From the NCBI GenBank assembly GCA_047495785.1, contig JBLDXI010000015.1:1240001-1304000 (forward strand): a stretch of 64,000 bases of DNA, in the 5' to 3' direction. A program made the translations under genes and the position numbers. Under the pieces are notes generated by a model. That model did no database searches. It was not told the origin of the DNA and worked only from the letters and a program-made list of their open reading frames with translations. Below are positions 3,709 through 59,826 of this stretch, piece after piece; the first letter of the stretch is position 1, and the number at the start of each line of letters is the position of its first letter. This stretch comes from Lepidodermella squamata (lineage: Eukaryota; Animalia; Gastrotricha).

Positions 3709-3917
3709 TCAATTTATCATGGTGGTCGATTTATTGTGAGTGAGATTTAGTGTATCATCTTAAATTAGCTAATAATGATATGCACAATGCTGCCTATTCA
3801 ATTGCAATAAATGGTTACAACTAAATACCAATACATGGCTTTGTTTCTCAGCTTCGCAGCTCAGCGATAGTCAACAGAGCAGCTGCGGAGTAATGCGTAT
3901 CCAAATTGAACTGCCAT

Positions 3918-30300: not shown

Positions 30301-33300
30301 AAGCGCAGAGCCAGAGCAAAATCGCATCTTGTATCGTTTTCTTATATAAGAAAAATATGAAAAGCCACAGCGATTAATGCTGCTTGCGGATACTTTTTGC
30401 AACAACTACAAGAAATCATCCTTATATTATTGTATCGAAACCAATTCATACTACATGCATTATTATCATTGGCGGCTGTATGTATGATCCTCTTTTATAC
30501 ATCAATTTATTAGCCATAGCTGTAGGTATAGTAAGGATAGACAAAGTACAGGCGCTTCTTGTTCGGCAGCTTTTTGATGCTTGCCACATTGCGCGGCGAT
30601 TTGTTATTCGCATCATTTGTACACTGAGACTTGTTTCTGCTGTGCGATGAGGAGACACCAACCACCACCGCTACTTATACAATGTTTTCATTTCCTGACT
30701 ACTTACAAATCGCAGTTGTACATACAGCCATATAGCCAGCCATTAGCCCGCGTCGATACATATCGAAAATTGTTTCCCTTTTAGGTATTTCAGCCCTTGA
30801 GTAACAATTTTCGCATAAATATCGCCGCAATGTTTTTAGCGGTAATTGCAACCATCATCGCTTTTAAACGCGCACTTCTCACTGCCTTAAAAATGTAACT
30901 TATCATTTTTAATATTTTTCTATAGATCACCTTAATTTACGCAGATATGTCATTTAATTAGCTATTAAAACGAAAGAAAATTTCGATGCGTCGCTGGAAA
31001 CGTTAAAAAGATCTTCCTTAAGATTATTTCTAATTTTACTGCCCGTAAAATTTGGAGGAAAATAAACAACTGCCGTGGTCGGAAATGTTATTCGGGACGC
31101 TCAAGTCGCTGAGTTGATAGCTATCAGAAATAATACGACATGCCAAATTCGAATATTGCCAACGTTGCCAATAACAACCTGCTCATGGCCGTTTTATCGG
31201 CGACGACCAGCGGCTCAGCGCCGTCAAATCAGGCGCATACCTCAACTTCAGCGCCGTTTTTCGGCGCATATCAGGTGAGAAAAACTCAAATAAAAAAAAC
31301 GGGAAACAGATATGTCAGGAGTTGATTTCCAAATTTTTTGATAAAGCATAAAAGCATCCTTAAGTTTTCAAAATTTTGGCTAGAAAATTGTATCTGTCAC
31401 CCCCTTGGAACTGGGCCTAGTCGGAACACTGGATCGAAACCTCAATTGTTTATTACGACACTCCATTTTGTTGAAGCAGCCAAGAGTTGAAATTAGAATT
31501 AAAATCCATTTTAATTTAATTTTTAAAATGTTCTATTTCTCAATAAATTTGAAAATAAAATTTAGAAAATTTGAGCTGAGCCAACTTATTTAAGACGCTT
31601 AGGAATTTTAAGTTTAATATCAAGTAGGGATATTTTCAAAATTCGAGCGAAATAATTCCTCAACCACCAAGAAATGATCCGATTTCTTAAATTTACGAAA
31701 AATTCGAAGAAATGAAGCCCGTTGCACTTTGAAATTTTAGAAAATAAAATTTCGAATTTCGAACACTCAGCCTGAGAAAAATCCCAGATTGTCTGAAATA
31801 TTTCTTCATCCACCTTAATAGCTTATTTTTGTTTCATTTTTATTAGGGTGATATGACGCCGCCGGTGTTTTCGACTACAACAAGCCAATCGGCGTGGCAA
31901 GGCGGCGAATTGGAATCAACCGTCCTCGTGACTCAGTACTCATTTCCCGGCGCAGCGACCACAACCCTGCGAACACCGACCACCAGCGACCACATCCTAC
32001 TTGGCATTTGCTTCATCGTCGGCGTGTTGGGCATTGTCGGAAATGCCGTCATGGTGACTAGCATTATAGCCGTGCGTTCCTTTCGCCAGGCCTCCAACAT
32101 TTTCTTCTTCCACCACGGCCTGTTAGAAATCGCCAAATCAGCCCTCATCATTCCGTACGCGCTTTCGATAACCGGAAAGCGCGCGTCCTACTGCGAGCTG
32201 CTCGGCGCTATGCAATGCGTCCTCGTCACGACGACTTCGCTCAATTTAGCCGCTATTACGATTAACCAGAGCTTTATTATCAGCCACACCCTGCCCGGGG
32301 CTCAACTCAACCCTGACGAGCAAAATAAACGGCAGCCGAAAAGTATGTCGAAGCAGCAGAATAACAACGATTCGAGGCAACAGCAAAAACAGTTTAAAAA
32401 ATCCTCAGATCAATCGAAACAGCAGCAGCAACAACAAGGGAATATTAAAATAGTCCCAGCCTTAGATCCTGGTGCTTTTGCGAAACCGAGCCTAAAACGC
32501 AATATAACCTGCGTTGTTTTCGGTGTTTTGCTCATTTGGATGGCGAGTTTAGTCCTGAATATGGGCGTTTCGTTGATAACCGGCTCCGGGCAGTATAACG
32601 AGAAAATTGGGCTGTGTTATTTTGTATACGGCCACCAGAAGAGCTATGTTGTTAATGTCATGTGGATTGTGGTCACGTCACTCGGTGTTGGTGCTACTAT
32701 TGGTTGTTTGCGGAAGCTCAAAATGGACTTGAGACGGAGTCAGGAATATCGTAAGTTAAAAACCGGGACAAAATCCAAAATCATGTCCAAATTTGAAAAA
32801 AAAATTCAAATTTTTCCCCGAAATTTAAAACACCAAATTAAATTGGACTCAGGTTAAATTTGAATAAATATAAACTTTTTAAAATTCTGAATGTTGGTCG
32901 TGCTAATAAATATTCAAAAAAATGTAATCATCTGATGAAAAGCGCGAAAAATTGGAAAAACCCAGAAATTTTCGATTTTCAATATTTTAAAATTCACGGA
33001 AATTGAAGAAAATTGAAAAACGCAAATTTCGATAAGAAAAAAATTGGAAAAATGTCTCTTAGCTTTGAAAATTGATATTGAACATTTAGCTCTCTCCTGT
33101 TATAGCAGTTCAATTTTTTAATCTTTCTGAATTTTTATAGTGATGAAAACTTTCCCAAATCAACTACGAGGCAATCGCCACCACAACCAGCAAGGCAATA
33201 CTCTGAACAATAGCAGCAATAGCCTAAAATCGAGATCACTGCCTCATCTACGCAATATTCAACCGTCGAATGCCGGAAACGCGGCGAGCGAGCAGCAGGC

Positions 33301-36300
33301 GAACTCGAACCCGCAAATCAACAACAAGGGTGACCAGATGGGCAAGAAAAAAAGCTCATCAGCTTCGCATGCGAAGCTGCCGCGGTCGTCAACAATCGAC
33401 GAGCGGCACCAACAGCGGCTATCAGCAATAATTTCTAAACAAGCTTTCCAGCAAACGCGGCTGTTAAATTGCCAATTCAACGTTATTGTCCTTCAAACAA
33501 TTTCATTCATCGTATTTTGGTACCCGTTATTCGGGTTGATTATCGCCGATAAGGAATTTATCGTCGATACTGAGATTTACAAGGCGCTAACGGTGTTGGC
33601 GTGGCTCAACGCGCCCTTGACGCCCGTTTTCTTCACGTACTTCAACTACGAGTGCTATTCGACCCAAGTCGCCGTTCGGTTGAGCGTCGTCGGCAACGCG
33701 ACGGCTCAGGTTGTCCACGAACAGGCGGCTATCGCCGAGAAAATCGGCACCACCGACGATAACGACCCCGATGATGATCAGAAAAATAATCACAGTAGTG
33801 GTAACAATAATAACGAGCAGCAGCGGCCGTTGAAAACTGCGACGATTTCAACGGCGGGCGAGCGCAATAAGCGGAGTAGTATGCAGGCGAAACCAGCTAC
33901 TATGGTGCCATCTATCAACAATTACCCGCATGGCCAGCTTCAAAAACAGTTCTATCAAGATGCGGCAAACGCGAATACAACAGTGAGTCATGCTAACCGG
34001 AATTAAATTTAATCTCGAATTGAACATTTTTGGGAACTATTCATTTTCACATTTCCATGGCAACCCATTCTTAATTTTGAACTGGAGCAATTTTTCTTCT
34101 GTTTCTTAGGTTAAATCCCAAGGGGCATTTATTCAAAAGTTAACGAAAATATAGGATAGAAAACCCGGAAAAGCTGGTATCGGGCTTTCCCCAGTCGAAA
34201 AGAAAATTCTGGATTTTTGAATTTTTCTGATCAGTTTCGTAGTTGCTTAGATGATTTTTTTTCTGAAAATGTAATGGGACATTGCCTCTCATTCTAGACT
34301 TTTCAGTTAATTTTCATTAGCTGTGGTACGCATGAGAAATACTTTAAAAATACCTTGAATAAACAGCTAATTTTGACCTTCTCAAAAACAATTTAAGGTG
34401 GAATTTTAAATTGGAATTCGAAAAATGGATGTAATTCGATGAATTGGATTTTTATTCGATTATCCTTGATCTTCTGTTTTAGTTTTCAACTTTCCGGCCT
34501 CCGCCGCCGCCTAGTTACAACATGACCGCCCGGAGTCTCCACGACCTGGAAGAACCGGGCGTCGACCCGGACCAGGGTGTCTACTGGTACGACCGCCGCG
34601 ATTTCTCCTCAAATTCGCTGCACCAACTCGCCATGCCGCGAACTGAAACTTTCCCGAAACTGCAACTCGACGACGGGCAAAACCAGACGGACTCGCTTCA
34701 ACGCGCTTTCTGGGCACGGCCCGCTCAAACGTCACGGTCACTGCGCGAAATTCGCGACTTCCGCCTACCAGCCGCTCCGGTTGTTAACAATAAGAGCCTA
34801 GGAGTTCGATTCCCAATAGCCCCATCGCCGTTGCAAAAAGTGATAATAACCAGCGATAACAACAACGAGTCGAACTCGCCGTCGATGCGGCCGCATTCGT
34901 ACGAAAACATCTCCGGCTATTCGTTCGACGGCAAAAAGCGGAGTCGAACAAGCGAATTGCGGCGCGAGATAAGCGATGAAGAGGACGATTCGGCGGAAGA
35001 TGAGGAGGAGATTCACCCGAGGAAGAAATCCCCGCGGCGCCAGCCGAGTTTCAAATCTATTCATCAGAGCGCGACCGCCCAGATGCCGATCGTCGGCTGG
35101 GCTGGGCAGCAGCAGTCGCAGAAAATGAGTTCGTGGCGGCAGATTGCGAGCCAGCCGACGAAATCAACGTCGAGTGGGCACAGTGCGGGTTCGCAGTTGG
35201 GGCTACTGGCGTCTCAGCAGGGGGAGAAGAAGCCGATGAAGAGTAGTTTGTCGAAACGAATGACTGGGCGAAGCGGTTCGAAGCGACGAACGAGAAACGC
35301 CGAAACAACGTCAGACGATGGTATGAATTTTCGAATTTTTGAATCTTATTCCAATTTAACCTCGTATTTCTTACGCAATTTTTCTTAATAGAAATTATTT
35401 ACAGAGCACATTTCCGCCGAGTTAAAAGTAAAACGCACCATTAGAACAACCTATTTTTTTACAATTTTATTGATTTTATAATTCCATTATGGTTAGGCAT
35501 TTTCGGCAATTCTGGGTAGATCATCTCCTAAATAACTACTTTAAACCATTCAGGAAACCTTATTTAGGGGAGCTATAATAATTTTCTAAGCTATAATTTA
35601 TTGCTGATTTATAAAATAAGAGCAGATTAAAAAATATAGAATCGAAGCAGCAAGAAAATTCAATTATTTTCATTATACTGAAAAATTCAATATTCACAAA
35701 AAATCGGGTTTGAGGGCCACGTGCGTCATAATATTTTAGATACAAAATCCGAAAAAAATCCGTGATTAATTTTTTTATTGAGAATCCAGCAGTCAGCCCC
35801 GCTGAAAATTCTCTAAAATAGATGCGTCCATATAGATTCAGATGTCCCTTAACATAGTTTGGAGATTAGTCGATAAGTATATGTACTGGCTTAACGCTAG
35901 AAGTTATGTTTTAGTTGAACCTTAACGTCATTCTAGAATGGCTACAACGATGTTGAATTTAAAATTATGACATTTTTTGTTCTTCGCTACTATTAGATGA
36001 CTATCCACCGCCAAGAACGCCTCCTCATCAAAGCCCGGCTAAAACGTCACTGAGAGCTCAACAACAGCCACAACAGCACCAGCAATTACAACCGCTCAAT
36101 TCGCAAAACTCGAAGAAGGTTCTAACGCAGCAACGCGCTGTGAGCAGCAGCATGACCGTGACATCGTCAACCGAGCAAGAAATACCAATCGGGACGTCGA
36201 AAATCGGCGGCGGAAAACTAGCACCGCAGGGCTTTAAAAATCCGTTGTATATCGAAGCCTTCAGGCGGGCTAATTTGAGAGCGCAGCAGGGAGGCGGCGG

Positions 36301-39300
36301 TACGAGTGATGAAGAGGCGGCTATTATGGCTCAGCAATCGCAGTATCACAACACAGCGCATCAATCCATTCCAATGACGGACATGGCGCCGTCACGGTCG
36401 AACCAACGTATCAGCGACACGCCTCAACTCAGGTAAATACAACAAATTCGCAAAATATTCCGAAAATGGGGCTAATTGTAGAAATAGAAAAATGTATACT
36501 ATTAATTCTTTGTTTCTAATCGAATAAAAAGCACTAATTCAATGTGGATTTCTCACATCAAAAAATAAGAAAAATGTTCCCCATACTTGTGAAAACTTAT
36601 TGTTATCGTATTAGGACGGAATTTTGCTTCGGTGAGTGTACGCTTTTTGTCTAGGATTGCATTGAAATCTATCCTGTAATATGCTAAATTTTTGTAAATA
36701 ATTTTACGAAATACCTTCCACTTCGCCTAATTATTGTTTTTCGCGTTCCTTTATGAAACTTCTTCAATATTTCCCATTCGGTTGTTTTTTCTAGAATTTC
36801 ATGAAATATTTGAATTCTGCGACGATAAAAGGAATGAAATAGACTCGAAAATGTCGAATATGTCGAATAAGTAGATATCATATTCTGGGAAAATCTAAGT
36901 AAAAGGGAATATTAGAGTGAACGCCTAAAATTCAATCATTTTTTGTGCGAAGAGATGCGAATTTTTCTTCTTCAATTTGTTGAAAAATAGTGGCTGGTAT
37001 ACCAAAAAAGTGTAGACCAAAGTATGGTAAGCAAGCGTCGATATTGTAACAACCTTCAACCAGTTAACCTGATATAATTCGAATGAATTTTTTCCTATTA
37101 TTATTATTATGAATGGAAAAGAAATTGCTATCCTTTATTTACAAAAACAACATCTTTTGACTAAAATAATTTTTCGTAACTTTCGCGTGAAAAAATCTTC
37201 ATTTGATTGACAAATTTCATATTATTTTCAATTTTTTTGCAGATATATAGCGAATCAAGGGCCGTGGAACAAGTCGATCAACGAGACGGAGGATGAAAAT
37301 TTTTCGGGCAGCGGTAATTTACGCGTCGATTCGCTGCAAAAGGGCACGACAAATGAACCGGACGAAGATGAAGAACTTGAAATTCCGATCGGAGCCGAGG
37401 CCGAACTAGACCAAGAAACGCAACTCCAGCAACTACAACAACCCTCAGCGCCGCCAATCGAGGCAATGGGGTACACCCGAATTGAATCTCACGTTAAAAC
37501 AGCTGGCGGGAATTCGGTTGATCGGCTGCAAATTTGGCTCGGGAAATTGGACACGCAGCAGCCTCAAACCGCGGTCATCTCAACGTCGCCGCCGAATCGG
37601 CCGAATAAGCCGAAATCGTTGATCGACGAATTTCATCAGCGCCACTGTCGTGATTTGAGCACGTTGGAGCGGCAAATTAGCCACACGGCTGGGACGCCGA
37701 TAGATATAACGATAACCAGTGGGAATACGAATAACTCGCAATCGAGCCCGAAAAATGCGCGAAAAAGCAGTGTGAAATCGCCGGAGCAGAAGGAGGAAGA
37801 AAAACGGTCGACTAGCGGCAGTGAGCAGCGCGAGATTTGGATTTAGAAATTTATTTTCAAATTTTTAAGGAAATTATTGTCAACTTTAATAATCAATTAT
37901 AGTTATTTATAGATTTTTGCACATTTGTACAGAACTTTCTCTACTTCTTTCTCAGAAATGAAAAAATACCTGATGCCGACTTGATTCAATAAAAAAAGTA
38001 ACAACAAGAGAGCGCAATAAAATTTGACGATGCAACCTGAGTAATTTTTTCCTTTTAAAAAGAAATTGTGTCCAACCTGTTCATAAGATCCGAGTAAATC
38101 GGTAGCGTCCAGGGATGGTGTGACTGCGAGAACGGTGAGAGGTCGACCGGCAACGCGAGCCAAATACCGGACAGCTGATGTTTTCCCCGAAAATTCATCG
38201 CCGTACTGCAAAAAAAATTAAATGAAATCAATAACAGCCAATTTCCAAAAAACGACCTGATTTCGGACAATTTTTATTTTTCAAGTCCACATTTTTCACA
38301 TTCAAAATGATTGAAAACAAAATTTTAGAAATTCAATTTTTCAATCAAATTTTTCAAATTTAATTCATTTGTTTCAGGAAAAATTACCAGAATAACCATC
38401 CAGCCTTTGTTCGAACAAGCTGTCATCGATTCGATAGCCGGAAGCCAGGCGTGGATAGCGAAATTCAACGCATCATTTTGCTGACCGTGAAGCGGCGACA
38501 GGGCAGTTGTTGTCAGAGTTGAGGCACCGAAAGTAACCGAATTCGGGCCATAGGAAAGTGCCCCATTCGGAATGTACAGCGGATTATGATCGGCATCAAA
38601 TACACCCAAGTAGCAATCGTGGATCTATAAACAAAAAAAATAATAAGTCAGTCATTAAAATTGGAAAATTCCGAATTAAATTGAAAATGTTTAAAGCAGA
38701 ACATTTTTTCAATTAAAGCAAAAAAATCAAAGCGCGCTTTTCATAAATCGCGTGCCCGTCTGCGATGAAAAAAAGCGACCTAAATTGGCCCAAACATACT
38801 ATCACGCATTGGCTTAACTCCAACCGATCGAATGTTCTCGAAAATCTTACTTTCTGCTGATCTTTCGGCTTTGAAAATCGAGCCGCGTAAATGACGTGCA
38901 CGAACCGGCCCGGATTTGCGACTTTCTCACCGGCCAACAGCTGACACCAGCGCGTTAAATCGCGCAAGTTAAACAGCGCATTCGACGCACTAAACGCGGC
39001 ATTTGCCTTTGAAGTAAAATCGACCATTAATTCAAGGGTAGCCACATCGATTTCGCCAAATAGCCCCCGCAAAATAACCATATAATCAGCATTCGTCAAT
39101 TGATCGACAAAAACCTGAAAAAAATATATTTAAAAAATCCGCCTTAATTTTTTATAATTTTTCAATACCTGAGTAAAACGGTTCAGAAAAGATCGAGGCA
39201 AATTTTTACGACCACCGCCGCCGAATGACGGATTTTGAGCGCCGAAAAATCGGCAACCCTCGTGAACTTTGACCTCAATGCCCAGTTCAGGAATCGTCGC

Positions 39301-42300
39301 ACATCGCCGGTGATCGAGACAGGCATTCAGGCCCTCGAGAACGGGTTGACTCGCCAGATTCAACTCATCAACCAGCACCCAATCGCCGTTTTTGAAAGCG
39401 CGCAATAGCGGCCCGTCGACCCAGGCGAAGCCGCCGTTTTGCTGCGGGAGGTGCGCGCCGAATAGATCGGCTAAATCTGTTTGCTCTGACAAATTAATTC
39501 GCACCAATTTGTGGCCAGTAACCGCGGCCAGCGATGCGACGAGTGATGTTTTGCCCACGCCAGGCGGGCCTTCGAGTAGAATTGGCCGGCAGAACGCGGC
39601 GCCTGTTTTCCGGTCATAGTCACACGTTAGACCGCGGAGGAGCCGGAATAAATTCTGCCGAGTTGTCGGCGATTCAAAACAGTAATCAGCAGAAACAACA
39701 GCGCCTGTATAACAAACACACAATGAAAACAGCGACTTGTATTTCCGTTCATTGTTTTTATTGCTTTCTGTTATGACCCGATTGTGACGTCACTCATTGC
39801 TTTTTATTGCTAATGAAAACCAGTGCGTCGCGAAATGAGCGGCACAATAAGCAAAAACGCATGTAATAAAAAAATGTGTGTGCGGTCCGCGGTTTGCTGT
39901 TTTCAATCGCGCGCAACTTGACCTGAGCAATTTTTAAGGCAGACTTTTCACTTTTACTCGTCGTCGCCGCCGATGTCAATCAACTAACCCACACCGGCTA
40001 ATTTTAATTAATCGTATTAAGTCAAATTTTCCACGCCATGTGCACTAGTCAGTTGTTAATAAAATGAAGTCAAGTAGCCAGATTTAGGTCGTCCACAGAT
40101 AGACACACACACACACACACAGAAGTGGGCGCGTGCTCTTGAAAAGCACACAACCTGTTACACGCGCGCGTTACAGCGCCACTTTTTCATCACGAGTGGA
40201 GCAGCTTTGGCGCAGCATCTCCCGCGGCTATTGTCCGGCCGCGGTCGCCAACGCCTTTAAAAGCGCCCGAATTTTGATCCAAACGTATCACTCATCACCT
40301 TCTCATTCTATTTCCTCATCTAACAAAGCAACAACAACAAAAGCAATTTAGCTCGCTCATTCGCTCTCACCTGCTTCGATACAATGCAATTAGGGCGCTC
40401 AGTTGCCTCGAGTCTATTTGTGGAGCCTGTCTAGCAATTGTTTTATTGAAAAATTGCGAGTGTCTCAGGTTGCACAATAGTACTCAGGGCGACGGGGCAT
40501 CGCCCGGTAACAATTTCAATTTTTAATAGTTGTTTTTTCTCAGAATTTTTACAGCCCTCCGAACCCGATATCGCATTTGTGCCGGTGTTCCCAGTTAATC
40601 AACTGGCACAATCCGATGTCAGGGGATGGCGGTCTGATTATTCTTAATTTGTCTTATTTTTTTCAATTTTTAATTCACCTTTTACGGTTCCCGACATCTT
40701 TTTGTGAGCAGTGTTCGGTATTAAAAACCGGGTCGCACTGGCACAAACCGATGTCAGGGGATCGTAGGGTGTTCAATCAATTTTTTCAACAAATTTTTTA
40801 CTATATTTTGTAAGCGCTTTTCTGGCGCCTAGTTTGGACTTGGGATTGCTGTCTTGCCTTGAAAAAGCATGTCATCAGCTATCACAGTCCAGACAAGGTG
40901 ACGGCATCGCTTTAACAATTTTCCGATTTTTTTCCAGGTATTTTAAAATCTGTCCAGCCGTTCCCTTGTTCTGGTGGTGCAGCCTGTTGTAAAATCTAGG
41001 TTGCACAACAGAACTCAGGGCGACGGCTCGTACAGCCAAATAAATTAATTTACTCACCTTGTTTTTTCTCAATGTAAAACGGGAAAACACCGAATTGTTC
41101 TGAATTTCCGCTTTCATTTGTTTTACAGTCGCATTGTAGGTTCAAATCGTTGTCGATCAGCCGGCCAATTTCGAGTTCTGCCTGTTTCTGAAGACCAACT
41201 GGCAGCCCGTCACCGATCGCTTTCATCGCGCCGTGTTGCAGAACGTGACCGAGGCAAATTCGACCCGATTGCACATGGTTTGACAGCACGAAATTCGCCC
41301 ACGATAGCAAGTCTCGAACTGTTGGTAATTTTCGGTAGTTTTGCTTGAATGTCGATAACCATTTAGCCATGCATGTTGCAACCTTGTTAGCTTCAATTTT
41401 CCTGTCAATGATACATTTTAATTTCAGCTAAACAGCGTTACAAAAGTGCATCTTAGACGCTTCCCGACGTCATTTTGTGGACAGTGTTCATTACTCAAAA
41501 TGAAACCCACTGGCACAAATTGATGTCAGGGGATAGTCGGATGACGATTGTTTTATTTTGAATGTAATTTTTCTTTTTTCATTTTCAGGATTCGCTAAAA
41601 TTTCTGAATTTCCCGATTCAGAAGAGTAGCCAATAGTTGTTCCGCATCAAATTCGTCAAAAACTACCTGCACAACTCAAATTCTGAATTTTTTACATTAA
41701 AAATTACGATAAAATTTTTCCATTCAATTCCATTCAATAATTATTTTAATTTTAAATGTTAGAAAGGTTAGAAAGAAGGATATCATTAAGGCTATGATCC
41801 TTTACTGCGAATGTTTCATTGCGAATGATATGGTCCAGAATATCGTTTAACATGAACTTAATTTAGAGAGAACCGATAGTATTGCCGGTCGTGCGAAGTT
41901 GTGTTTCCGTCGCTTTCGAATTACAATATTATTCACGTCCTTCAAGCTACTTAAAAATGATCCTAATCCTAATAACTGGCCAAACCAACCTTCGATCAAC
42001 TTTCGATTCGATCAGAAAAATCGGAAAAGAACACTTTCCTACCAAATTTCGATTTACCTTCCCACTCGGTAACGGAAAGTTTTTCTGTCGAGCTGTGTTA
42101 AAAGTTTCAAATATCCGGCTAATCGACTCAGGATTGAAATTAACCATAGAATCATAAGTTCATACATTTGTGGGAATTGGTAGAAAAAAACTGGCTTCAA
42201 TGACTCCATCGATTATATTTGGGGTTTTAGTCATTCATAATTGCTTTGTAAAGCTGCATCCAAGGGTAGCGAATTATTATCACAATCAAAATGTCATGTC

Positions 42301-45300
42301 GTGATTGCGCTAAATTACAGTCGGACAGGTGTGGATTCAAACGCCAACCTCATTCGATTTTGCTCTTCTTTCTATGATTTTCCGGTCTGATTTTTAAGAT
42401 TCTGCTGAGTTTACTTCTGTTTCTCGCTTACGACGAATTTACGTGTAGTTGGATTTTCGGATTTCCGGAGCTTTTATCAGCAGAATGTATCATTTTTACG
42501 GCTGCTGTATTTAAAAAAAATCCAAACAAATAAAAACCTACATCGTTTCAGATTTCTGTAGCGTAAATTCCGCAATTGCCACCAGCTCGTCAAAATCCTC
42601 AATAGCCGGGCAGAAAATCTCCGTAAAACGATTGCGCAGCGCAGGTGATAATTCGCGCTTCCCGAAATCACCACCCGGGTTCATCGTCGCAATAATGCGA
42701 AATTCCGGCCGCGCATGAACAACGCAAACCTCTTCGGAAATGACCTTTTTCAACGACGTTTTAGCCGCGGCTTTCTCCGGAATTAACAGCGATTTATCAT
42801 CGGCATCCAACACCGAGTTCAAGCGCTCTAGCACCGAATCATCGGCGAGCGAAATTTCGTCGACGAGAAACGCCGAGCCGGCTAGCATGGCCCGCGTTAA
42901 CGGGCCGTCCTGCCATTGAAATAACATTTTCGACGCATTTTGCTCGTCGCTGTCATCCGAGTCCGAGGTGTTTGGCCGTAGCGATCCGATAAAATCGCCG
43001 GCTTCTGTATGCAAATGGCAATTTAGGGTGACTAAATCCTGGTCGTTGTTCGATTTTGCAATCAGTTGGCACAGCGTGGTTTTGCCACATCCCGTATCAC
43101 CGACCAGTAGAACAGGCTCGCCGAAGTGGAATGAACTGGTTAGTAAGACAGCCATTCGGCGCATTGATCGCGTGAAGACCAGGTGGTCGAATTCGTGACT
43201 GATTTTAGCGGTTTCGACCAATTTGTCGATAAGACCGCGAACTGTTGGCGAAGTTTCGGACGATTCAAAAGAGAACAGACGCTTTTCCGGATCCAATCTA
43301 TAATGAGAATACAATATACATTTGACGATAGAATTTTTGATAAATTTGAAAGTTTAATAATTTTTGAAGGATGGTACAGATTGAATTTCTAAATTTTAGA
43401 TTATATTCCTTTTCTTTAGAATTTAATCACTGCTATCCGCAATCAAGTGAATTTACTTGGCCTTATCTAAATTCTTTGAAAATCGCCAATATTTTCAGGT
43501 CTGATTATAGATAAATAATTCAAAATTCCCGTGAAAAATTTAATGCCAAAATTTTGAAATTCTTTGAAATTTTAAGAAATTCACATGGACGATATAGAAT
43601 CAACTGAAACCAACAGCACCAAAATAAAAATATTTCCTCAAAAGATAATTCTTTAAATTGCCGTTTCATCACGACAAAATTCCGAATAACCGCAATAATC
43701 TGAGTAGTGTGGGGTTCGAAATGTTGGACACCTTAAATTTGGGGTTCCTAAATTGAATCTAAGGATCCAGTAGTAGATTTTCCCGAAATCAGGTTTTTCG
43801 AGTCCTAAAACCTAATTTTTTTTCATTATGACGAATCGAATTGAGGTTTTTACAACAAGTAGTTTAGGCCATGAAAGGCAAGCTTATGAGCGAGTTATTC
43901 TACAGCTAGCGGAGCCGATATCGATTTCAATCATTGATTTTATAAATCAGTCATTTTTCCTATACAACTCCGAATTTAAAAAAAAATATAAAATTGAAAA
44001 ATTCAAATGACTCGCCATAGATGACGTTATCAGGTAGCTAAAATAAAAAATCATGGCATCGGAGGGTATCGATATCGATCACGAATAAAGAAAAAAATGA
44101 AGAAAAGAAATCCCGAGATCGCAAAAAAATCAGAAAAATTCAGAAAAGTGTAGCGCCAGGACTTCGAAATTTAGGGCGGGAACTTCAAATTCAGTGATGC
44201 GAATATTTAGACCCATTTGAACATTCACAATTCAAATTTCAAAATTCATTTGATTTTAGATACGAAATTGAATCAACCGTTTACCGCCTAAACCCTGACG
44301 CATTTTTTCCATGCTTCCTTAACACTGAAAAAACTGTATGAATCCACCCCGATCAGGATACCCTAATTTTGATTTTGCTGCAGCTATAACCGTGGTAGTC
44401 ATTGAAATAACATTGATTGATAATGAAAGTACAGATCGTGGGCAATCATTCAATGATTTTTTGTCAGTTTTTAGCAGTCATATTTTTTTAATGACGTATA
44501 ACAGTAATCTTGAAGTATATTGAAGTATACGATGAAGTCCTAAAATTCCGGATTAGTTTCCACAAATTGAAGAATCAGTAGTTGGAAAATTCCAGTTTTG
44601 TATTAATTAGCTCACTTGCACTTGAAATGCTTTTCCAGCACTTCAACAACCGTTTTCTCGTCCTCCGCATTTCTCGCCTGCCCAGCCAACAGCAAATACC
44701 CGTGATCGGCCAAATGTTGATTCCAGTCGTACTTGGTCTTGCTGAAATCCCCACTCGACTCCGCGCTCGAGTACCGCCTCGCCCACCGGAACAGATCTCG
44801 CAGCGTCATGAAGCCCTGCCGACCCGCAAAAATACCCGACCGCCGGCGCCGAATCGCCAAATCGCGCATAACAGCCACGAGGCGTTTCGCATGAGACGGC
44901 GGCAATTTGCACCGTTTCGACACCAAAATTTCAAGCTCAGCGTCGTTCAACTCGCAGAAATGAAGTTCGATGAAGCGATTGCGAAACGCCCGAGACAGCG
45001 CCTTTCGGCCTGCATAGGCCCCGGGCGGGTTTTGCGTCGCAAAAATTCGAAACCGCTTGTGAGCTTTAACAACCTCCTGCGTTTCCGGTATCACAATTTC
45101 GCGATTATCGTCCAGAACGCGGTTCAAAGCCTCGAGAACTTCACCAGGGGCGAGGTTCAACTCGTCGAGAATCACCCAATAGCCGTGCCGCATAGCTGAG
45201 ACGAGAGGGCCGTCTCGGAAGACGAGTTGCCCCGTTTCAGGGTCGGCCGTGTAAGAGCCGACGTATTCGCTCAGGTCGGTGTGTTCGTGGTTGTTAAGGC

Positions 45301-48300
45301 GGATGCAGCGATTGCCGGACAGATCGGCGATGTATTGAACGGTCGACGTTTTGCCAACTGCCGTTTCGCCCTGCAGCAGCACCGGGTAATTGCTAAGAAG
45401 AAAAAATAAGATTTAGATATTTTCAAATCAAGTTTAGCTTAAATTTTTCAATTTTTTGTGTAATATTGAAAAATCTTCGTTTGCTTAATTAATGGCCGAA
45501 AATAAAAATTCAAATTGCGATTTTCAGCTATTTATAACCATCCACTCATTCTGTCACATTGTTTATTGGTTCTATTGGTTCGAGCTAATGAAGACGATAA
45601 ACTGCCGTCAAAATATAGCCGAAATTGTCAGGCAAAATCCACACGTGGTCACCACATCCTAACATGGACTCGTGGAAAAATTCAAGGTCATCTATATCTT
45701 GCAAGCTGATGCCTGGTGGGAGTGCCCTGAGGACCCCAAGTGTCAAAAGACCGGGTTTGTAGCCATGCGGGCAGCGCGAGTCCGTTACTATTACGGCCTA
45801 GCTGATGCGAAATTCGATGTCAAACGACTGCTGGAAGATCAACGGTCTCGCTATGATGAGTACTGGCCGACAGCGCGCAAGTAGCCGTTATGCAAACGAA
45901 AGTGGGCCTTATTACTTGGAAGATCATCCTCGTGCTGAGATTTTCAGCGCGATGGCAAAATCGGATTCGACATTGAATCGGCGCGCGCTCTTGTTATGCC
46001 GGTGGTTGACCGCTTTTTATAACCAATTTTTCAATGACTTTAAAATTTAAAATTATCATTCCATCACAGTGCCATGAAAAGATGGCCGACTTTGTCAGGC
46101 GAAATCCACACGTGGTCACTACATCGGTAGATGGACTCGTTGACATTCAGGACTCGTTGACTACACACTACACGATCAAGTATGAATAAATGGCTCAGAC
46201 TGACGCTTTATCACGATGGAGCTCCAACAACTAATCGGGCTGAATGAAAATGACGACAGACAACATTCGACACAAGTCCTCTCTAACGAGTAGGGAGTGG
46301 CGGAGAACTTGATTGTAATGAGCAGCAATAATTCCTGTCTGAAAAACAGTTGCGTCCGCAGAAAGAAGAGAATGGAGGTGGATTCTTCATTCCATGATAA
46401 CATCTTCTTCAAACCCGACTTGCTTAACATCTCGTGACTGGGAGAGGTTTTTCGAGGAGCTATTTGGATTTCGATTATATAGAGAAAGTCTTTTTCTTTT
46501 CATATTTAAAATCAATTCTTTCAATCAAGGTTGAAGGCAGTTTCAAGTATTAATAATTCAAGTAAATGCTGGAACGCGCTGCTCACTGATTTCTCGTGCG
46601 AGACAGGTTCTCAATAGCTCGACGCTGATCCGAGCGTGTCCTATCGGTGGCTACCAAATAGACACGATAGAGCTTCAACAGTTAATTGGGCTGAATGAAA
46701 ATGACAACAGACTAGCATTGTATCCTGAATTTGGTAGATATTCTGTCTGCACACGCATATCCTTAGCGAGATATTACCCCTGAGACTATTGTCAGATGCT
46801 TGATGGATTTTAGGTGTTTAGTATTTGACTTCCCGACCGTGTTGCTGAGTGATCAAGGTACACAACTTGACTCAGAGCTTGTTGAGAAACTCAGCATTTT
46901 TTTGGCATAAAGAAGCTCTTATTCCCTTTTCATCCACAGGGAAATGACCAAGTCGAGTGACTAGTGAGACTAAATTGTGATATGTTGGCGTCCGAGTTGA
47001 GCGACTCTTGCAACGTTTATCTTCCTCAAGTTATGCGTGCCTATTGCACTGCTCTTCACGAAAGCACAAGAGCCTCTCCTCATGAGGCAGTTTTTGGATA
47101 TCCGGGCAAGGCAGCCGGGTCCTTCTTGCATTCACCTCCTTCGGGTGTGCAGAAGATTGATTTGTTTGACCATGTTTCGATCACTAGAGAACAGCTTCAA
47201 AATGTGTACAGCTATCCAGCAAAATATCTGCAGAAAATCTGCCACCGCTGCCAAGGGTTGCTGCGAAAACGAGTTAGTGACGTTCCAAGCCGGTCATCTA
47301 CGCCAAGCTTTCGTTCGATCAAAGCTGATCAGCATCGACCCACACACCGACGAGACAAATAACTTGGTTGAGGATGCAAAGGCGCTCAAACGTCGTGTTA
47401 TCTTGGAGCTTTTCGCCTGGCAGTCATCGTCCACGAAACGCTTTAAGCAGCTCTTCCAGCAGCTCAAGTCTATTTTCCACGATTTCTTCTTCGGTTCCGG
47501 CGGCACAGATGATTTTGCGCCTCCGATCATCTGCGAGCAGTTGCGGCTCGAAGTCGACGGAGACATCTATCAAGTACTACGTCAGGTTCTGCGCTCAAAT
47601 CAGTCGTAGCTACACGATTCTTCAATTTTTGTTCAATTACTGTATTACTGAGTAAATTTCGATGATGTTAATGTCACGTTTTCAATTTTTCTCCTTTGTT
47701 AATGAAAACGACAGAAAGAAATCTAGGTCAGGACCTAACATCCCGATTTTTGCGAAAAATTGTTTTCTTATCTTGCGCCATGACATCGCGTGTCGTCTGG
47801 CTAAATTCCAATACTAATAATAGCATGCATATAATTGAAATAATCAAATTATTTTTTTGAGTTTTCCAGTTATTTTAATGGTAGTATAAGATAAATTTAG
47901 CCAGATTGCGAGTGTGAAAATAATGATAAATTAATTAAATTACCTCAAAGCAACCACACGAGACAGCATTTCGATATTTTTCGAAACAGTCGCAGTTTGG
48001 ATGAAATCGTCACGTTCTTTCGGCTCAACGCCACCCTTCGGCACCTTGAACTTCGTTTGATTTTTCAAAAACTCCTTATCGACAACAGCCTGACTGCCAT
48101 ACACCGCCAGCAACGCTTCTTTCGTCACCCAATTCAGCGAATCAGAACTCAATTGGGTCAAAAATGAAAGCAGCAGACATTCCGCGATTGATTTCAGATT
48201 ATTGCCAAGCGGGTCTTTCGCGGCTAGAGACAAAGCTCGGCACAGGGTTCGAATGCTGAAATGCGGAGTTCCTCCCGATCCATCAGTCAACTGGCCGTCC

Positions 48301-51300
48301 TTAGCCGCTTTCCGAACATTAAGGTAGAACTGGGCGAGTCGATTCACCAAATCCGGGCTGATTTGACCAGGGTTAGCTTGCGATAACGGGCTCAGATAAT
48401 CGCTGATCATCAGCCGGAGATCCGGCAGTTCAGACGGGTCGGGTACGAAAACTTCACTGAAACGAGCGCGAAGGCTCTCGGGCAGCGGTTTCTTACCGAC
48501 ATCAGTCGCCGGGTTCATACAGGCGAAAAGCCGGAAATCAGGGTGGACGGGTATCACGTCCAATGAGCCGCGTTCGAATAGCGTGAGACATTTCGCCTTC
48601 GCGCCTTCCATCAAACCGGCGAGGGAGTCTAGCGTCTCCTGGGGGGCTAGGTTGATTTCGTCGAGTAGCAGCCAGAAACCTTCTCGAACAGCCTTGACGA
48701 GCAGGCCCTCGACGAAGCTGAAGGGTAGGGAGCCACTGGCTGTTAGAGCTCGGTGTTTTTCGCATTGTTCAAGGAAGTCTTCGTGGAAAGTTTTCCAGGT
48801 CGCGGCGGTTTCGCTAGTCATTCGCGAACCTAAAAAATTGAAAATGCAGTTAGAATAATTGCCTAAAAATTACGTCTTACACGCCATGATATTTTAAAGC
48901 TTATCGACGTAATTATATTTATATGGCAGGGACCCCATATTTTTCGAATTTCTGAGCAATTTCTTTAGTGTTTTTATAAGATTTTCAGAGAATTTATCGA
49001 TCTCATCTGGATGGCCCTGAAGAACAGACTATCGCTGGAAACTGCCCACAAACTCGTTTACTTCAAATCGGGGCTATTGTTCGAAAAGCTTCCGAGTGTC
49101 CCATCACTTTAAAATCTTTCAAGTGTATGTGAGGAAGTCGGCATTCGTTGGAATGGTCCTGCAGTTCGGAAAGCCGATGGTCTGATCCGTCGACCACCGC
49201 TTCAAGGGTGGCCCGAAGAATTTGAAAAAGAGCAACGACGCGTTTGCGAGGTCGGATCGTAAGGAATTTCTGCTTCCCAGGCCGCATGATGATGATCGTG
49301 GATTCTTGGTCATGCTAAGGACTCGCTACCAACAGGAGTAATTCGGATCTTTTGATGGAAACCTTAATTTTAGGTTGTTCAAAAACAAAGACCTTCATGA
49401 AACGCTGCTTCTTGACGCTACTCAATGATATTTACATGGCAGGCACCCCTTCATTTCTTCGGCTCCTTAAAGTTAACTCCGAATTACTCCAGATCGGAGG
49501 AGCCAAATTCGAAAATTATTCCTCCTCAAAATTATACTCCAATGCGGTGGCAATTTTTAATAAATCAAATCAATTGGTGGTAACGGCCACACGCAATGTG
49601 GTGTCTAAAATTCGATCATAAATCGGTCGAAGGGTCGATTATTCAAGGAATGGCACAGGAAGTCTTGGAGCTTTCCGAAGTCAATCGGAGCCCGCTTCTC
49701 TGGCTTGCGATCGTGCTGGCTCAAGTCGAAGACGAAGCCAAGCTGGCACACCTACTTACCGACATCGCAGCTGTTTTCCGCCGGTGGAACCGAAGTCCGG
49801 GTGGCGAGCCCGATTTGCGTTGGTGCGACACGTGTGAAAATGACACTAACAACACGGAAAAATGCATCAAGCGTCGCCGGTTCGATCAAATCTCAAGCCG
49901 AGGCCGTGGTCGTCGCTTCTACTAGCGGTTCCTATGATCGTATACCAATTTAACTCTATGAGTGTGCTACAGTAATTGTGATTTTAATTAAAAATTATCG
50001 CAAATACGATTTGGCGGGGTGGGGAAGTATGTGAGGTTGGTCTGGTGTCAACGCAGCGTACTTTCTCAGAAAGTCGCACGCCACTATCACTCAGCAATTC
50101 TTCACGTGATTCTATTGTGATGTTTATTAAGGCGGGAATTCGGCCCCATATGAGCGCTTTGCAGAGTGGAAATAAATGAAATAGTGTTTCGGCTTAGTTG
50201 AGTGTTTATTATTCTTGGAGTTCCGTATAACTAGTTCGGTTCAGTCTGATAGCCGTTAACGAACCAGGTCACCCCTACGAAATCGAGCAGACTAGTGATG
50301 ACTGGGTTCGTGACTGTGGCCTTGACATCGGCGACCGTAGGTTCACGTTGACAACGGACGATATATTTATACCCTTGGTATCATAGAGAAAAGAGCAATC
50401 GGCTATTCGGCTAATCGGCATCTGGGCAACAGATCAAAGTTTTACTCGCTTGTCTCATCCCTCGAACACTGTTTGACGGTTTCTGGAAGATGACTACTTA
50501 TTGGATCTTCCCACCTAGATTGTTATCATGCCTGATGTTGGTGTTGGCCCCTCGGATTCGTCTCATTCCGCAGCCCTTCTCGGGTTATGGGCGGAATCGA
50601 TGCCTAATAAAGTGTCAAGTCAAACACTTCGTTTGCGGTCCGGACAATGCTGGAAGCGTGGTTTATGTTCAGGAAGGTAATTACTGAATATATCAGTAAG
50701 GTAATAAGGAATATATACCGCTCTTGATCCTCGACGGGGATTAAGCTCTTTGGACCTCTAGATTCGAAGAGTATCTCTATGGACCTACCTCTTCTACCTC
50801 GAGTTGCTCCGCCGTTTCCGCCGTCGGTTGGGTCGTAAGAGCCCGATATGCGTTTTGTGTTCAGCCGTGCCAACTGGCCGGGTTATGAAGAGGAATGCAG
50901 GGTTAAACTCCGGTCGGTTGCCTTCCCCCGTGAGGGCGACCCTGTTGTAGTTCTTGATCAGTTTGCCGATTCCCTGATTGAGGTGATGCTCCTTAGCGCG
51001 GCGGTAACCATTCCGCGCGCTCTGGTGGGCAAATTGCCTAGCTTGACCTATCAGAGCTATAGAGCGGCGGACGAGCTGTGGAAATCGAAATCGAAGAGAA
51101 AGGTCTATAGCATCTAAGGCTGCTGCTACACGGCAGGTGGCCCTTGAAGTTGGTAAGATCATTCAGAAGATCAGCGTGCAGCGTCTTACTACGGTCGAGG
51201 AACAGTTCAGGGCGAATCAATCAGCCATGGTCCGTGTTCCAGAGGTAGGATAATGGACCACTCGGACGAGAAAGCGCAAGAACCATCTGGTAACGGTGAG

Positions 51301-54300
51301 GAGGTCATTCAGTGGTGCAAGAACGCGGTCATTTTCGCATTCTAAAAGAAACTACCCCCGATTCAATTGCGAACTACATCTTTTGGGTACCTCGGAAACC
51401 ACCGCTTCTTCTACCGATGGCACGGTTGCGGACATGCCGCTAGCAGTGCCGCTGGCTGCACCGTTTGTCGTCGCACAATAACAGCCTGTTACGGGTGTAA
51501 CGAACTAGGGCATTGCTTAGGTGACTGTCTAAACCCTATTTTTGTCGACATTTTTCAGAAATTGTTACCTTTTTGTGGCTGTGACGCCACCCGGCCATGA
51601 CACGTGCTCTTCTCGCACGCGCCCGTCTCTCCCGTCTCTCAGCATATAATTATGTAGATACTCGGACTGAATCGTTATTGATTACCTGTCCCGGTTAAAC
51701 CGCTCATCTATTCGACGAATCCGGTATGCTCAATTGCCTTTGCTTCCTTCCCCTTTTTCAAATCTAATCTCCGATCAGGGTCTTTCGTTTTGAATAAAAC
51801 AAGAGATCGTTGGAACAAGGTTGCCTCTTCGCCTTGAAATTATCGGTCTCCGCCACACTTTTAATCATTGGAGCGGTTATCGTTTGCGCCTCCAGAAGCG
51901 TTATCAAATTCTTTGAAGTGAAAAATTAGAGAATAAACTGTGAAAACTAACCTTGATTTTGAATAGCCGATTGAACAACGCGTTCGATGAGACCCGTAAA
52001 CGTCGCCCAAGCTCTGTTCGAAAACGAAGACTGCAGATGCGATAAGAACGCCGCGTTTTGAGTCACCGAAAACGACTGGCTGAACAAAGCTTCAAATCGA
52101 TCTTTCAGCGGCGCGAAGGTCTGCTTGAAATCAACAGGCCGATAACCGCCCAACAGATCAGTCGCATCAGTTTGCTGGCTCATATTCGCGATTCGAAGCT
52201 CGTGGCCGGTCGATCGGGCCAAATGCTGGACGAGGTAGGTCTTACCGCAGCCGGTTTCACCGACCAGTAGCATAGGCTCGGCTTGAATGGCGCCGCAACA
52301 CACGATTTCGAGCAGATTTGCGAAATGGCGGGTGAAAGACGTAACTCCATTCGATGGGCCGTGGTTAGATTCGGCTACAAACGGGTCGAAAGACGGGAAA
52401 TACGGCAAAATTGCGCGTCCAACCTAAAACATTTGCATTTGATTTTTAGAAGTGGTACAGTTAACCAATGAAAATTGTCATTTAAATTTTAAATTCAATT
52501 TAAATTTCAAAATTTTGATTTTTTCGAATTTTTCAATCCGAAATTTTGATTTTTCCGAAATTTTCATTCCGAAATTTAAATTTTAAATTTGTCCCAAAAT
52601 TTTTAATTTTAATTTTTTCCGAAATCTTGATTCCGAAATTTTGATTTTTTCAATCAAGTTCTCTAGATATGAATTCAAATCAAACCTTCAGATGTTTAGC
52701 ATTTTGGTGATTTTCGACGTGAGCCTTGTGGTTGAACAGCATGTGCTGCGCATTTTCCCGCGAAATGCTGAACAAGACGCCGAGTCGGGCGCATAGCTCC
52801 AGCCGTTCGTTGATATCCGGCATATGTGCCGTGAATACATCAACCGCTTCCAGCCAAATGCGATGAGCCATTGTCTCGCCGTCGTCTAAATTCGAAATTT
52901 GCCCGCCGTTGAGATAGCGATCGATTCTTCGAATCAGCTTGACAAAATCCCGCAGTGTCATTTGCTTACGACCGGCTAGTCGCGATAGCGTGGTTGAGGT
53001 TATCGCGCTTGGAGTCGCTTTTTCCTGGTCATTCTCAGCTGTACTCGTGGCTAGCAGTGAGTGAGCGGCGGTTGAGCAAAATGCTGAGACGGTTTGGAAA
53101 ATTTCCAACAATTTTCGCGAGAGATCTTCGCCAAAGAGACTCGTCGGAATTTGCTTGTTAATTATCTGGAAAAAACCATTTCGAAATATAATAAAATAGG
53201 AAAATTCAATGAATAAATGGCAGCTATGCAATAAGTATACTCGTTTTCAGACGAATAGGAATTTTTCCCATTATATTCCCAGAATATTTTACGAGAGAAA
53301 ATTGAAAATCATTTTAATTTTGATGGACAGAACAGCAATGAAACTAAGGCATTCATGTAGATTAAGTTTACACGCATCTCGACAAGCTTTTCCCAACTTA
53401 ATCGGTCAAATTGGGTGAATTCAACGCTCTCATAGGCTAAAGACTCGCCAAATGACTTTTGAGATTGCTCAACACTTTATTATTTGAAAGTTACTCGAAA
53501 ATTTGCCTTCGTCTACAAAAATTTGTCTTTTTGTTATAAAATCTTGAAACGAAATAAAGAAGATGTTATGTTATGTTATGTTACAAACTTCCGCCATTCA
53601 TGTTGCTTTTCAACTCCTCACTATCGACATTTGCCGAGCAGATGAATATTAATTGAGCTCATCAATCATGACATCATTTCGGTGCGGGCTGATCGAGTCG
53701 AGGAAAGAAGCTTGGACGCAACAGTTCTGTTATGCGCGTTTCACATACTTCAAGCGATTTGGCGCTGGTGAATCGAAAAGAACAATACCTACGATTTCTT
53801 CTGAAGATGCACCCGCCTTGCGTTAAAAAATTGCTGATTTTTTCCTTCAATTTTTGTAATTTTCGTATTTCAAGAAGTCTCATCTGCGCAGACTAAACGA
53901 CGCGCTTCCTGTCTACTGTCGACTGTCCTGCAAGTTATTGCTAGTAGAATTCGTCCAATGCAAGGCATTGTAGTAGCCCTAGTATTTGATAATGAAAATA
54001 AGATGCAGGCTTTACGAAAGCTTTTCCAGCAGTCTTCTATTGAAAGGGTTTCAACTCTATCGTACTCGCGAACGCGCGCTATTAGCGACATTCCTTCAAC
54101 GTCTTAAGCTAGTCAGGATACCTCGAGCTCGTCAGTCGACAGGCTTTCGACTGTCGGGCGCATTCGAAGTCTACTCGCTGCCTAGAAGATCGACAAGCCC
54201 AAGTTCGAGTCTAAGGCTACCAGGCAGTGCGTTATTTGGAACAAAATAACTAAGGTACCCAACGAGGGCACGCCCGTCTCGCCTTAACAAAGTGGCGAGC

Positions 54301-59630: not shown

Positions 59631-59826
59631 CTCCCATACAAACAACGTAAAAACCACCTAAAACAAAACAAAATCAGTATTCATACTTTAATAAAATGCA
59701 AAAAATCGAAGCAGGAAGAATTTTACGAGTGACAAGTTACAGCAGTCGTGGATATAAAAAACGCAATTTTTCTACGTTAATATTGTGTTGGTACCGGTGT
59801 CAACCTAAAAAAATAATCGTTTGTTT

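Follow-up and report, generated by a model that had tools for sequence, protein, structure and literature searches.

Six conserved hairpins, probably a microRNA cluster, antisense in the midasin introns of the gastrotrich Lepidodermella squamata

The 64-kb stretch of the Lepidodermella squamata genome analyzed here ("the window" below is this whole stretch) carries on its minus strand the gene for midasin (MDN1) and, on the opposite strand within two adjacent introns of that gene, six hairpins that probably represent microRNA (miRNA) genes. The host is identified by flanking open reading frames (ORFs) that contain dynein-type AAA_5 and midasin AAA lid domains (Pfam); the AAA_5 domains run along the minus strand from ~55.3 kb down to 39.1 kb. 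An earlier note on this DNA had named MDN1 as the host, with the hairpins antisense to it and the sixth hairpin in the next intron, and both statements hold. Hairpins 1 to 5 share one intron, hairpin 6 lies beyond the exon at 41058-41401, and the whole cluster is enclosed by the exons at 42538-43314 and 39130-39723 (Table 1). The two host introns are ~1.1 and ~1.3 kb long. The exon that divides the hairpins has the donor AG/GTGAGT and the acceptor ACAG/ (the slash marks the splice site). Its coding frame is kept in L006, a 3.2-kb Logan contig from a distant relative, where the corresponding exon encodes a product (P0123) that is 58% identical to that of the window. In a literature search, midasin introns were nowhere reported to host miRNAs.

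Table 1. Features of the hairpin cluster and its surroundings (window coordinates; MFE, minimum free energy in kcal/mol; z, relative to 200 dinucleotide shuffles per hairpin)
Feature	Position	Strand	MFE	z	Evidence or description
Hairpin B1	40393-40505	+	-53.2	-5.8	5' arm core 40404-40425; 3' arm core 40470-40491 (TTGCACAATAGTACTCAGGGCG)
Hairpin A1	40552-40636	+	-39.3	-4.8	5' arm core 40564-40584; 3' arm core 40604-40625 (TGGCACAATCCGATGTCAGGGG)
Hairpin A2	40680-40769	+	-44.6	-7.1	5' arm core 40689-40710; 3' arm core 40739-40760
Hairpin C, miR-2-type seed	40816-40910	+	-34.5	-2.4	5' arm core 40826-40846; 3' arm core 40880-40901 (TATCACAGTCCAGACAAGGTGA)
Hairpin B2	40950-41035	+	-45.1	-6.1	5' arm core 40962-40982; 3' arm core 41001-41022 (TTGCACAACAGAACTCAGGGCG)
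Hairpin A3, next intron	41456-41538 (MFE stem); 41440-41551 with wider flanks	+		-5.2; -4.9 with extended basal stem	5' arm core 41462-41483; 3' arm core 41511-41532
Midasin exon, last AAA_5 found	39130-39723	-			Pfam AAA_5, E = 8.5e-23; flanks the cluster intron
Midasin exon dividing hairpins 5 and 6	41058-41401	-			Splice sites read from the sequence
Midasin exon, preceding AAA_5	42538-43314	-			Pfam AAA_5, E = 8.9e-24; opposite side of the cluster
Midasin AAA lid domains	44612-45382, 47940-48821, 52680-53231	-			Domain search
Candidate upstream regulatory region or promoter	39799-40263	+			Collinear blocks common with L006 and a TATA-like motif; predicted function
Collinear blocks, window and L006	39799, 39945, 39974, 40022; (CA)n 40103-40123; GGAGCAGCTT 40198-40207; GGCGCAGCATC 40209-40219	+			Shared 10-mers
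AATAAA, putative poly(A) signal of a short primary transcript	41039-41044	+			Motif scan; 4 nt past hairpin 5
AATAAA/ATTAAA, putative end of a long primary transcript	41696-41701	+			Motif scan; ~150 nt past hairpin 6

The hairpins were folded at the six stretches singled out in the earlier note, and the comparison with shuffled sequence had been set beforehand as a test. Refolding places the stems at the claimed sites, from 40393-40505 through 41440-41551, with energies of -34.5 to -53.2 kcal/mol and z values of -2.4 to -7.1; all six are unbranched or nearly so. None of 200 shuffles matched the native fold of the five hairpins other than C, and 3 of 200 folded as well as hairpin C. The tight packing of the first five is borne out by spacers of 46, 43, 46, and 39 nt. 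The family motifs are likewise present where they had been reported: GCACAA-N7-TCAGGG (family A) is exact at 40606, 40741, and 41513, the GGTTGCACAA..CTCAGGGCGACGG arms (family B) are at 40468 and 40999, and TATCACAG (hairpin C) is at 40880. The window holds no further copy of the family A motif, and the 3' arm motifs of the cluster are all unique to this locus within it.

Beneath each proposed 22-mer is a lower stem of 9 to 13 bp, and the apical parts measure 18 to 44 nt (69 nt in one copy from L006); as modeled, such dimensions are in keeping with those of miRNA precursors in invertebrates. All six hairpins of the window and all six of L006 have at least ~16 pairs in a ~22-nt duplex and a ~35-bp stem and fold better than shuffles. 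In a sliding fold of the whole window, 4 of the 9 unbranched hairpins at or below -38 kcal/mol fall in the 1.1-kb stretch of the cluster, a count to be read with the caveat that raw MFE in such a scan is dominated by GC-rich midasin exons (e.g., at 6.4 to 7.9 kb), which otherwise make a poor background. In the 3' exons of midasin (6440-7960), which are very GC rich and whose coding sequence abounds in GCC and GCG, fold energies are strong on either strand but carry no meaning. Because such exons contrast with AT-rich introns, raw MFE hairpin scans of this genome need a correction for GC content.

The strand antisense to midasin is the more stable one in all 12 hairpins of the two species, by 4.7 to 16.5 kcal/mol (5.5 to 16.5 kcal/mol in the six of the window; for B1, the minus strand folds at -36.7 kcal/mol). 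This agrees with the earlier proposal of a plus-strand preference through G-U pairs, which turn into C-A mismatches on the sense strand. The strand difference bears directly on the idea that the hairpins are sense-strand elements of the midasin pre-mRNA introns, such as splicing regulators or intron-derived RNAs. Sense copies are certainly transcribed within the host pre-mRNA, and the reverse complements of most hairpins do beat shuffles (z of -1.1 to -5.5). However, every one of the 12 folds less well in that orientation, and the miR-2 seed of hairpin C, described below, is legible only on the plus strand. The hairpins also lie off the splice sites: they are interior to the introns and on the strand opposite midasin, and none of them ends at a splice site, so that they were rejected as mirtrons. 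Sense-strand elements are thus a very improbable explanation.

An orthologous counterpart of the locus comes from L006. Among 5.8 billion proteins, the product of the exon at 39130-39723 has two close relatives, P0003 (from L006) and P0004 (from a third species, contig L005), each 89% identical to it; a midasin fragment from Rotaria is 50% identical. With the protein of the exon at 41058-41401 as the query, L006 is the sole match. L005, with ~73 to 74% nucleotide identity in the exon, ends ~240 to 330 nt upstream of the exon, short of the cluster. L006 contains six hairpins of the same families (two B, three A, and one C) in the same midasin intron and in the same antisense orientation, with z values of -4.2 to -6.9, all more stable on the antisense strand. 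Its ortholog of hairpin C has a z of -6.7 and has TCAGCTATCACAGTC and GACAAGGT in common with the window copy.

Window and L006 are 80% identical in amino acid sequence across the two flanking exons, and only 27 of 103 four-fold degenerate sites in these exons (26%) are identical, which equals the random expectation and indicates saturation. Against this background, the 22-nt 3' arm cores of orthologous hairpins are identical at 117 of 137 positions (85%), the opposing 5' arm cores at 104 of 132 (79%), the apical parts at 116 of 216 (54%), and the 15-nt flanks at 31 of 85 and 46 of 98 (36 to 47%). The ranking that the earlier note had read from the copies within the window, with guide arm above star arm above loop, is therefore reproduced between species, with the flanks in last place. 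The 3' arm cores of B1 and B2 are each identical at 22 of 22 positions, inside identical blocks of 29 to 30 nt (29 nt for the B1 3' arm), and the entire B2 hairpin is 89% identical over 66 nt.

The differences that do occur preserve pairing. Within families, the 3' arm is constrained, as had been claimed, and the 5' arm varies mainly by transitions, with pairing kept through G-U. Between species, C/U and A/G differences of the 5' arm opposite an invariant GAUGUC keep G-U pairing, and basal stems show double changes with pairs kept. The invariant stretch of the family A 3' arm starts exactly at UGGCACAA. Just above this conserved block, the two preceding bases differ between the species and are compensated on the opposite arm, with A-U/C-G in the window versus U-A/U-A or U-A/G-U in L006. 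As judged from this comparison, the substitution pattern is that expected for a guide on the 3' arm and a 5' arm that needs only to pair. A MAFFT alignment of family A with RNAalifold yielded only 15 pairs, owing to indels in the loop, and a pair table anchored on the 3' arm was used instead.

Individual orthology is clearest for A1, which pairs with the L006 copy rA1 (the prefix r denotes L006 copies) and has the 5' arm ACCCGATATC in common with it. A3 is closest to rA3 (0.89 over the arm cores) and then to A2 (0.86), and A2 also pairs best with rA3. The hairpins are arranged as B-A-A-C-B, exon, A in the window versus B-A-B-A-C-A, exon in L006. These orders require that a rearrangement or a lineage-specific duplication took place at least once, and this event carried A3 to the far side of the exon in the species of the window.

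A second version of the locus is available from run X1, the only public run that holds its DNA. Over 39100-43400, this run contains contigs identical to the window (depth of ~36 to 40) and a variant that is ~97% identical (locally ~90%), with a depth of ~66 to 87; the variant contig spans 39100-41070 in one piece. The two versions may represent haplotypes that differ in dosage, or the sample may contain two strains. Three segments of the AT-rich intron between 41548 and 42514, of 559, 81, and 251 nt, are missing from the variant. A second run of the same study has only short AT-rich pieces that match by chance. At least 18 substitutions and 5 indels are listed for 40393-41040, and the duplex cores, 217 nt in all, contain none of those listed. 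The listed variants sit in terminal loops (40446 and 40723/40724), at the base of the stem or just outside it (40501, 40774, 40945, and 41031), or in spacers; those of A2 are confined to its terminal loop (40723/40724) and to a site past the stem (40774). The chance of finding no core variant is ~1e-4 when variants are counted singly and ~0.01 when neighbors are merged into 11 events.

The same contigs bear on whether the units are relics of miniature inverted-repeat transposable elements (MITEs), satellite monomers, or chance hairpins in AT-rich intron DNA, an outcome that the earlier note had kept in view. The units are similar to each other, closely spaced, and partly rearranged between species, as such elements might be. 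However, no further copies are present in the 64 kb, and the variant contig spans hairpins 1 to 5 at the depth of the adjoining exon, which excludes a high-copy repeat. The units are also syntenic with those of L006: although synonymous sites are saturated between the two species, the position is orthologous and arms are identical at 22 of 22 to 30 of 30 positions. In JGI metagenome contigs, a strict pattern for the B arm has no matches. The 11 matches to a loose pattern were rejected as chance, their contigs having a GC content of 44 to 69%, no 3'-arm hairpin, and no other family motif nearby; such chance matches in GC-rich contigs without a hairpin are all that these scans yielded. An origin from repeats or from chance folding is effectively refuted.

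Hairpin C has the seed AUCACAG of miR-2 at positions 2 to 8 of its 3' arm guide, conserved in both species. The MIR-2 family comprises miR-2/13/6/11 in insects and miR-2/43 in nematodes and usually forms tandem clusters in protostomes; its linkage to miR-71 is common, although not universal. The locus resembles this family in the seed on the 3' arm of hairpin C and in the tandem arrangement of paralogous hairpins, and the L006 copy of hairpin C has a CUUUGAC-type middle, which we take to be that of miR-2/13. It differs in that hairpin C has no match to the Rfam mir-2 model, no miR-71-like sequence is found within 3 mismatches in the 64-kb window, and only one member of the cluster has the miR-2 seed, the other five having different seeds.

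Families A, B, and C have in common a 3' arm that starts with U-N-N-C-A-C-A-R and, near its end, CA-R-GG-N-GA. Alignments of the A and B 3' arms score above those of shuffled sequence (P ≤ 0.0004 for the window, 0.004 to 0.02 for L006), and both families contain GCACAA and UCAGGG, which indicates that A and B are paralogous. The similarity of C to B has P values of 0.0002 to 0.005 in the window and 0.06 to 0.4 in L006; on these alignments, the six hairpins may share one origin.

The MIR-92 family is marked by a 3' arm with the seed AUUGCAC and a 3' half of the CCGGCC type. Family B is similar to it in having UUGCAC near the start of its conserved 3' arm. However, the base before UUGCAC is G instead of A in all four B copies (AGGUUGCACAA), so that no register of family B gives AUUGCAC, and the rest of the arm is unrelated. 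With no match to the Rfam mir-92 model either, the assignment of family B to MIR-92 was rejected. The seed of MIR-96/182/183/263 is UUGGCAC or AUGGCAC, and the guide of this group comes from the 5' arm. Family A contains UGGCAC, and two of its L006 copies read UUUGGCAC, which we take to be the 5' octamer of miR-96/182. However, the motif is on the 3' arm, which is the constrained arm of family A, and the window copies have CUGGCAC (they read ACUGGCAC). Covariation of the two bases that precede UGGCAC with their pairing partners makes it probable that these bases are outside the seed. Given these differences and the lack of an Rfam match, family A was not accepted as MIR-96/182/183.

It is nonetheless possible, if rather doubtful, that the hairpins are real miRNAs of which A and B are divergent members of catalogued families, e.g., MIR-2 paralogues with mutated seeds, MIR-92-like (UUGCAC), or MIR-96/182-like. 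This is a question of classification only, since the mechanism would be unchanged, and its probability overlaps that of the interpretation preferred below. The motifs common to A, B, and C, the window alignments of A and C with B, and the octamer of the two L006 copies all favor such a placement, and families specific to rotifers and to other lineages are named in MirGeneDB. On the other side are the Rfam searches of both species, in which mir-2, mir-92, and mir-96 gave no match at E ≤ 10; the C-to-B similarity, which is not significant in L006; the 5' arm guide of miR-96/182/183, opposite to the constrained arm here; and the compensated variation just before UGGCACAA, which makes those bases unlikely seed positions. 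A literature search found no paper that contains the exact arm sequences or the seed octamers of the cluster. Nor do matching sequences occur in the supplements of the rotifer miRNA paper or in the main text of the gastrotrich one. In a survey of 25 syndermatans, none of them has Mir-133 and no monogonont has Mir-2 (PMC12256650). The miR-2-seed hairpin described here and the 50% identity to the Rotaria midasin fragment fit poorly with a rotifer, and the seed points to a protostome.

As compared with Rfam and the literature, A and B are likely new families. The more specific proposal is that they are uncatalogued sister families (core GCACAA; guides UGGCACAA and UUGCACAA) that arose in a miR-2-type cluster by duplication and seed mutation and were kept, together with their midasin position, across synonymous saturation. 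It is put forward tentatively, its chances being a little short of even.

The region upstream of the first hairpin has 22 10-mers in common with L006 (6 of them outside the CA repeat), in collinear order; block-shuffled sequence has 1.0 on average. A TATA-like motif, CCTTTAAAAG, is located at 40254-40263, 130 nt before the first hairpin, and L006 has the TATA-like CCTTATAAAC ~85 nt before its own first hairpin. The upstream blocks and the TATA-like motif fit a promoter belonging to the cluster itself. The (CA)n tract is at an equal relative position in L006 (~1978-1998, minus strand) despite neutral saturation; it may have been conserved as an element or may have expanded independently. Between 41000 and 42600, the plus strand has only three AATAAA/ATTAAA motifs. 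From the spacing of these signals, hairpin 6 may be part of a read-through isoform or may have its own start.

The interpretation that best accommodates these data is a conserved, probably lineage-specific cluster of six miRNAs with guides on the 3' arm, antisense in the midasin introns. The plus strand would encode six canonical animal miRNA genes, five in one intron and one just across the next exon. The ~9- to 13-bp lower stem, the ~22-bp duplex, and the variable apical part would provide what Drosha/DGCR8 and Dicer require. The 3' arm would give rise to the ~22-nt guide, with its 5' end most likely at the U, or one base before it, of UGGCACAA (A), UUGCACAA (B), and UAUCACAG (C). A start one base upstream fits family A equally well, and the conserved block of family B reaches 4 bases further 5' and ~4 further 3'. 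Hairpin C would be a miRNA with the miR-2 seed, and A and B would be sister families born by local duplication, with GCACAA common to their seed regions. Transcription of the cluster, probably polycistronic, would start from the intronic promoter predicted at the TATA-like motif and would end past hairpin 5, at the AATAAA at 41039, or past hairpin 6.

An alternative at this level is that the hairpins are conserved structured RNAs outside the Drosha/Dicer miRNA route, either precursors of endogenous small interfering RNAs or antisense noncoding RNA modules that tune midasin transcription or splicing. Conservation and structure alone are no proof of miRNA processing. The cluster also abuts a splice donor, with B2 ending ~22 nt from 41057/41058, and any transcript that read through would run antisense to a midasin exon. 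However, bulged arms of 28 to 51 nt with one strongly constrained arm of ~22 to 29 nt make a miRNA profile, in contrast to the long perfect duplex of hairpin RNAs, and the 3' arm of one hairpin has the miR-2 seed, exact and where it would be expected. In addition, the spacers and loops vary freely, which is not obviously allowed in a structured long noncoding RNA module. These features make the alternative improbable.

We put the probability that the six hairpins are genuine miRNA genes at about 0.8. Several observations weigh against this interpretation, the main one, which keeps the estimate from being higher, being that the locus is known from DNA alone, the sole run that contains it not being on record as RNA. 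The cross-species conservation rests on one relative, L006, and the differing hairpin order requires rearrangement or independent duplications. Hairpin C of the window folds only marginally better than its shuffles. The whole window has no match in Rfam at the gathering thresholds, and the mir-2, mir-92, and mir-96 models fail as described above; in permissive Rfam searches, the matches are to models of unrelated miRNAs and reflect no more than a generic hairpin likeness (E of 0.04 to 8). Finally, the polymorphism argument is incomplete, because the listing covers 35 of the variant contig's 43 substitutions, and can be regarded as supportive.

Comparable clusters are found in other animals. 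The early-embryonic clusters Drosophila miR-309~6 and Caenorhabditis elegans miR-42~44, which the earlier note had offered as an analogy only, also have mixed seeds that include a miR-2-seed member, a spacing of ~40 to 50 nt, probably a single primary transcript, and guides on the 3' arm; the likeness is one of organization, and the position antisense to midasin is different. The locus also resembles intronic antisense miRNA loci with conserved host synteny in being antisense in an intron of a conserved housekeeping gene and in keeping this position across species, although neither the host gene nor the miRNA families are the same.

Other genes are nested in midasin or adjoin it. Three plus-strand ORFs of 288 to 334 amino acids, located at 31853-35388, are nested opposite midasin, and the first of them weakly matches 7tm_1, a domain of G protein-coupled receptors. 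L005 has similar ORFs at 3677-4884, beside the same midasin exon, which indicates that their nesting in midasin is conserved. Beyond the 5' end of midasin are three apparently intron-free genes, encoding NMNAT (58593-59657, minus strand), EI24 (59827-60861, minus strand), and a HAD-IIA phosphatase of the chronophin/PGP type (61949-62917, plus strand). The closest match of NMNAT is 73% identical, and the nine next matches examined, from insects, a cephalopod, and sharks, are 52 to 57% identical. EI24 has one relative at 64% identity. In related environmental contigs, EI24 adjoins an Arf-family gene, MMgT, and RME-8; with the neighbors of EI24 differing in this way, gene order is only partly conserved.

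If the hairpins are miRNA genes, the understanding of miRNA action would be unchanged, since clustered, intronic, antisense, and 3'-arm-dominant miRNA genes are routine. The locus would add six miRNA genes, probably including two uncatalogued families, and conserved lineage-specific miRNA families are useful phylogenetic markers. Should A and B be new sister families, they would serve as clade-defining markers and as an example of new seeds derived from an old family. A miR-2-seed member beside related hairpins with other seeds would illustrate the birth of seeds by duplication within a cluster.

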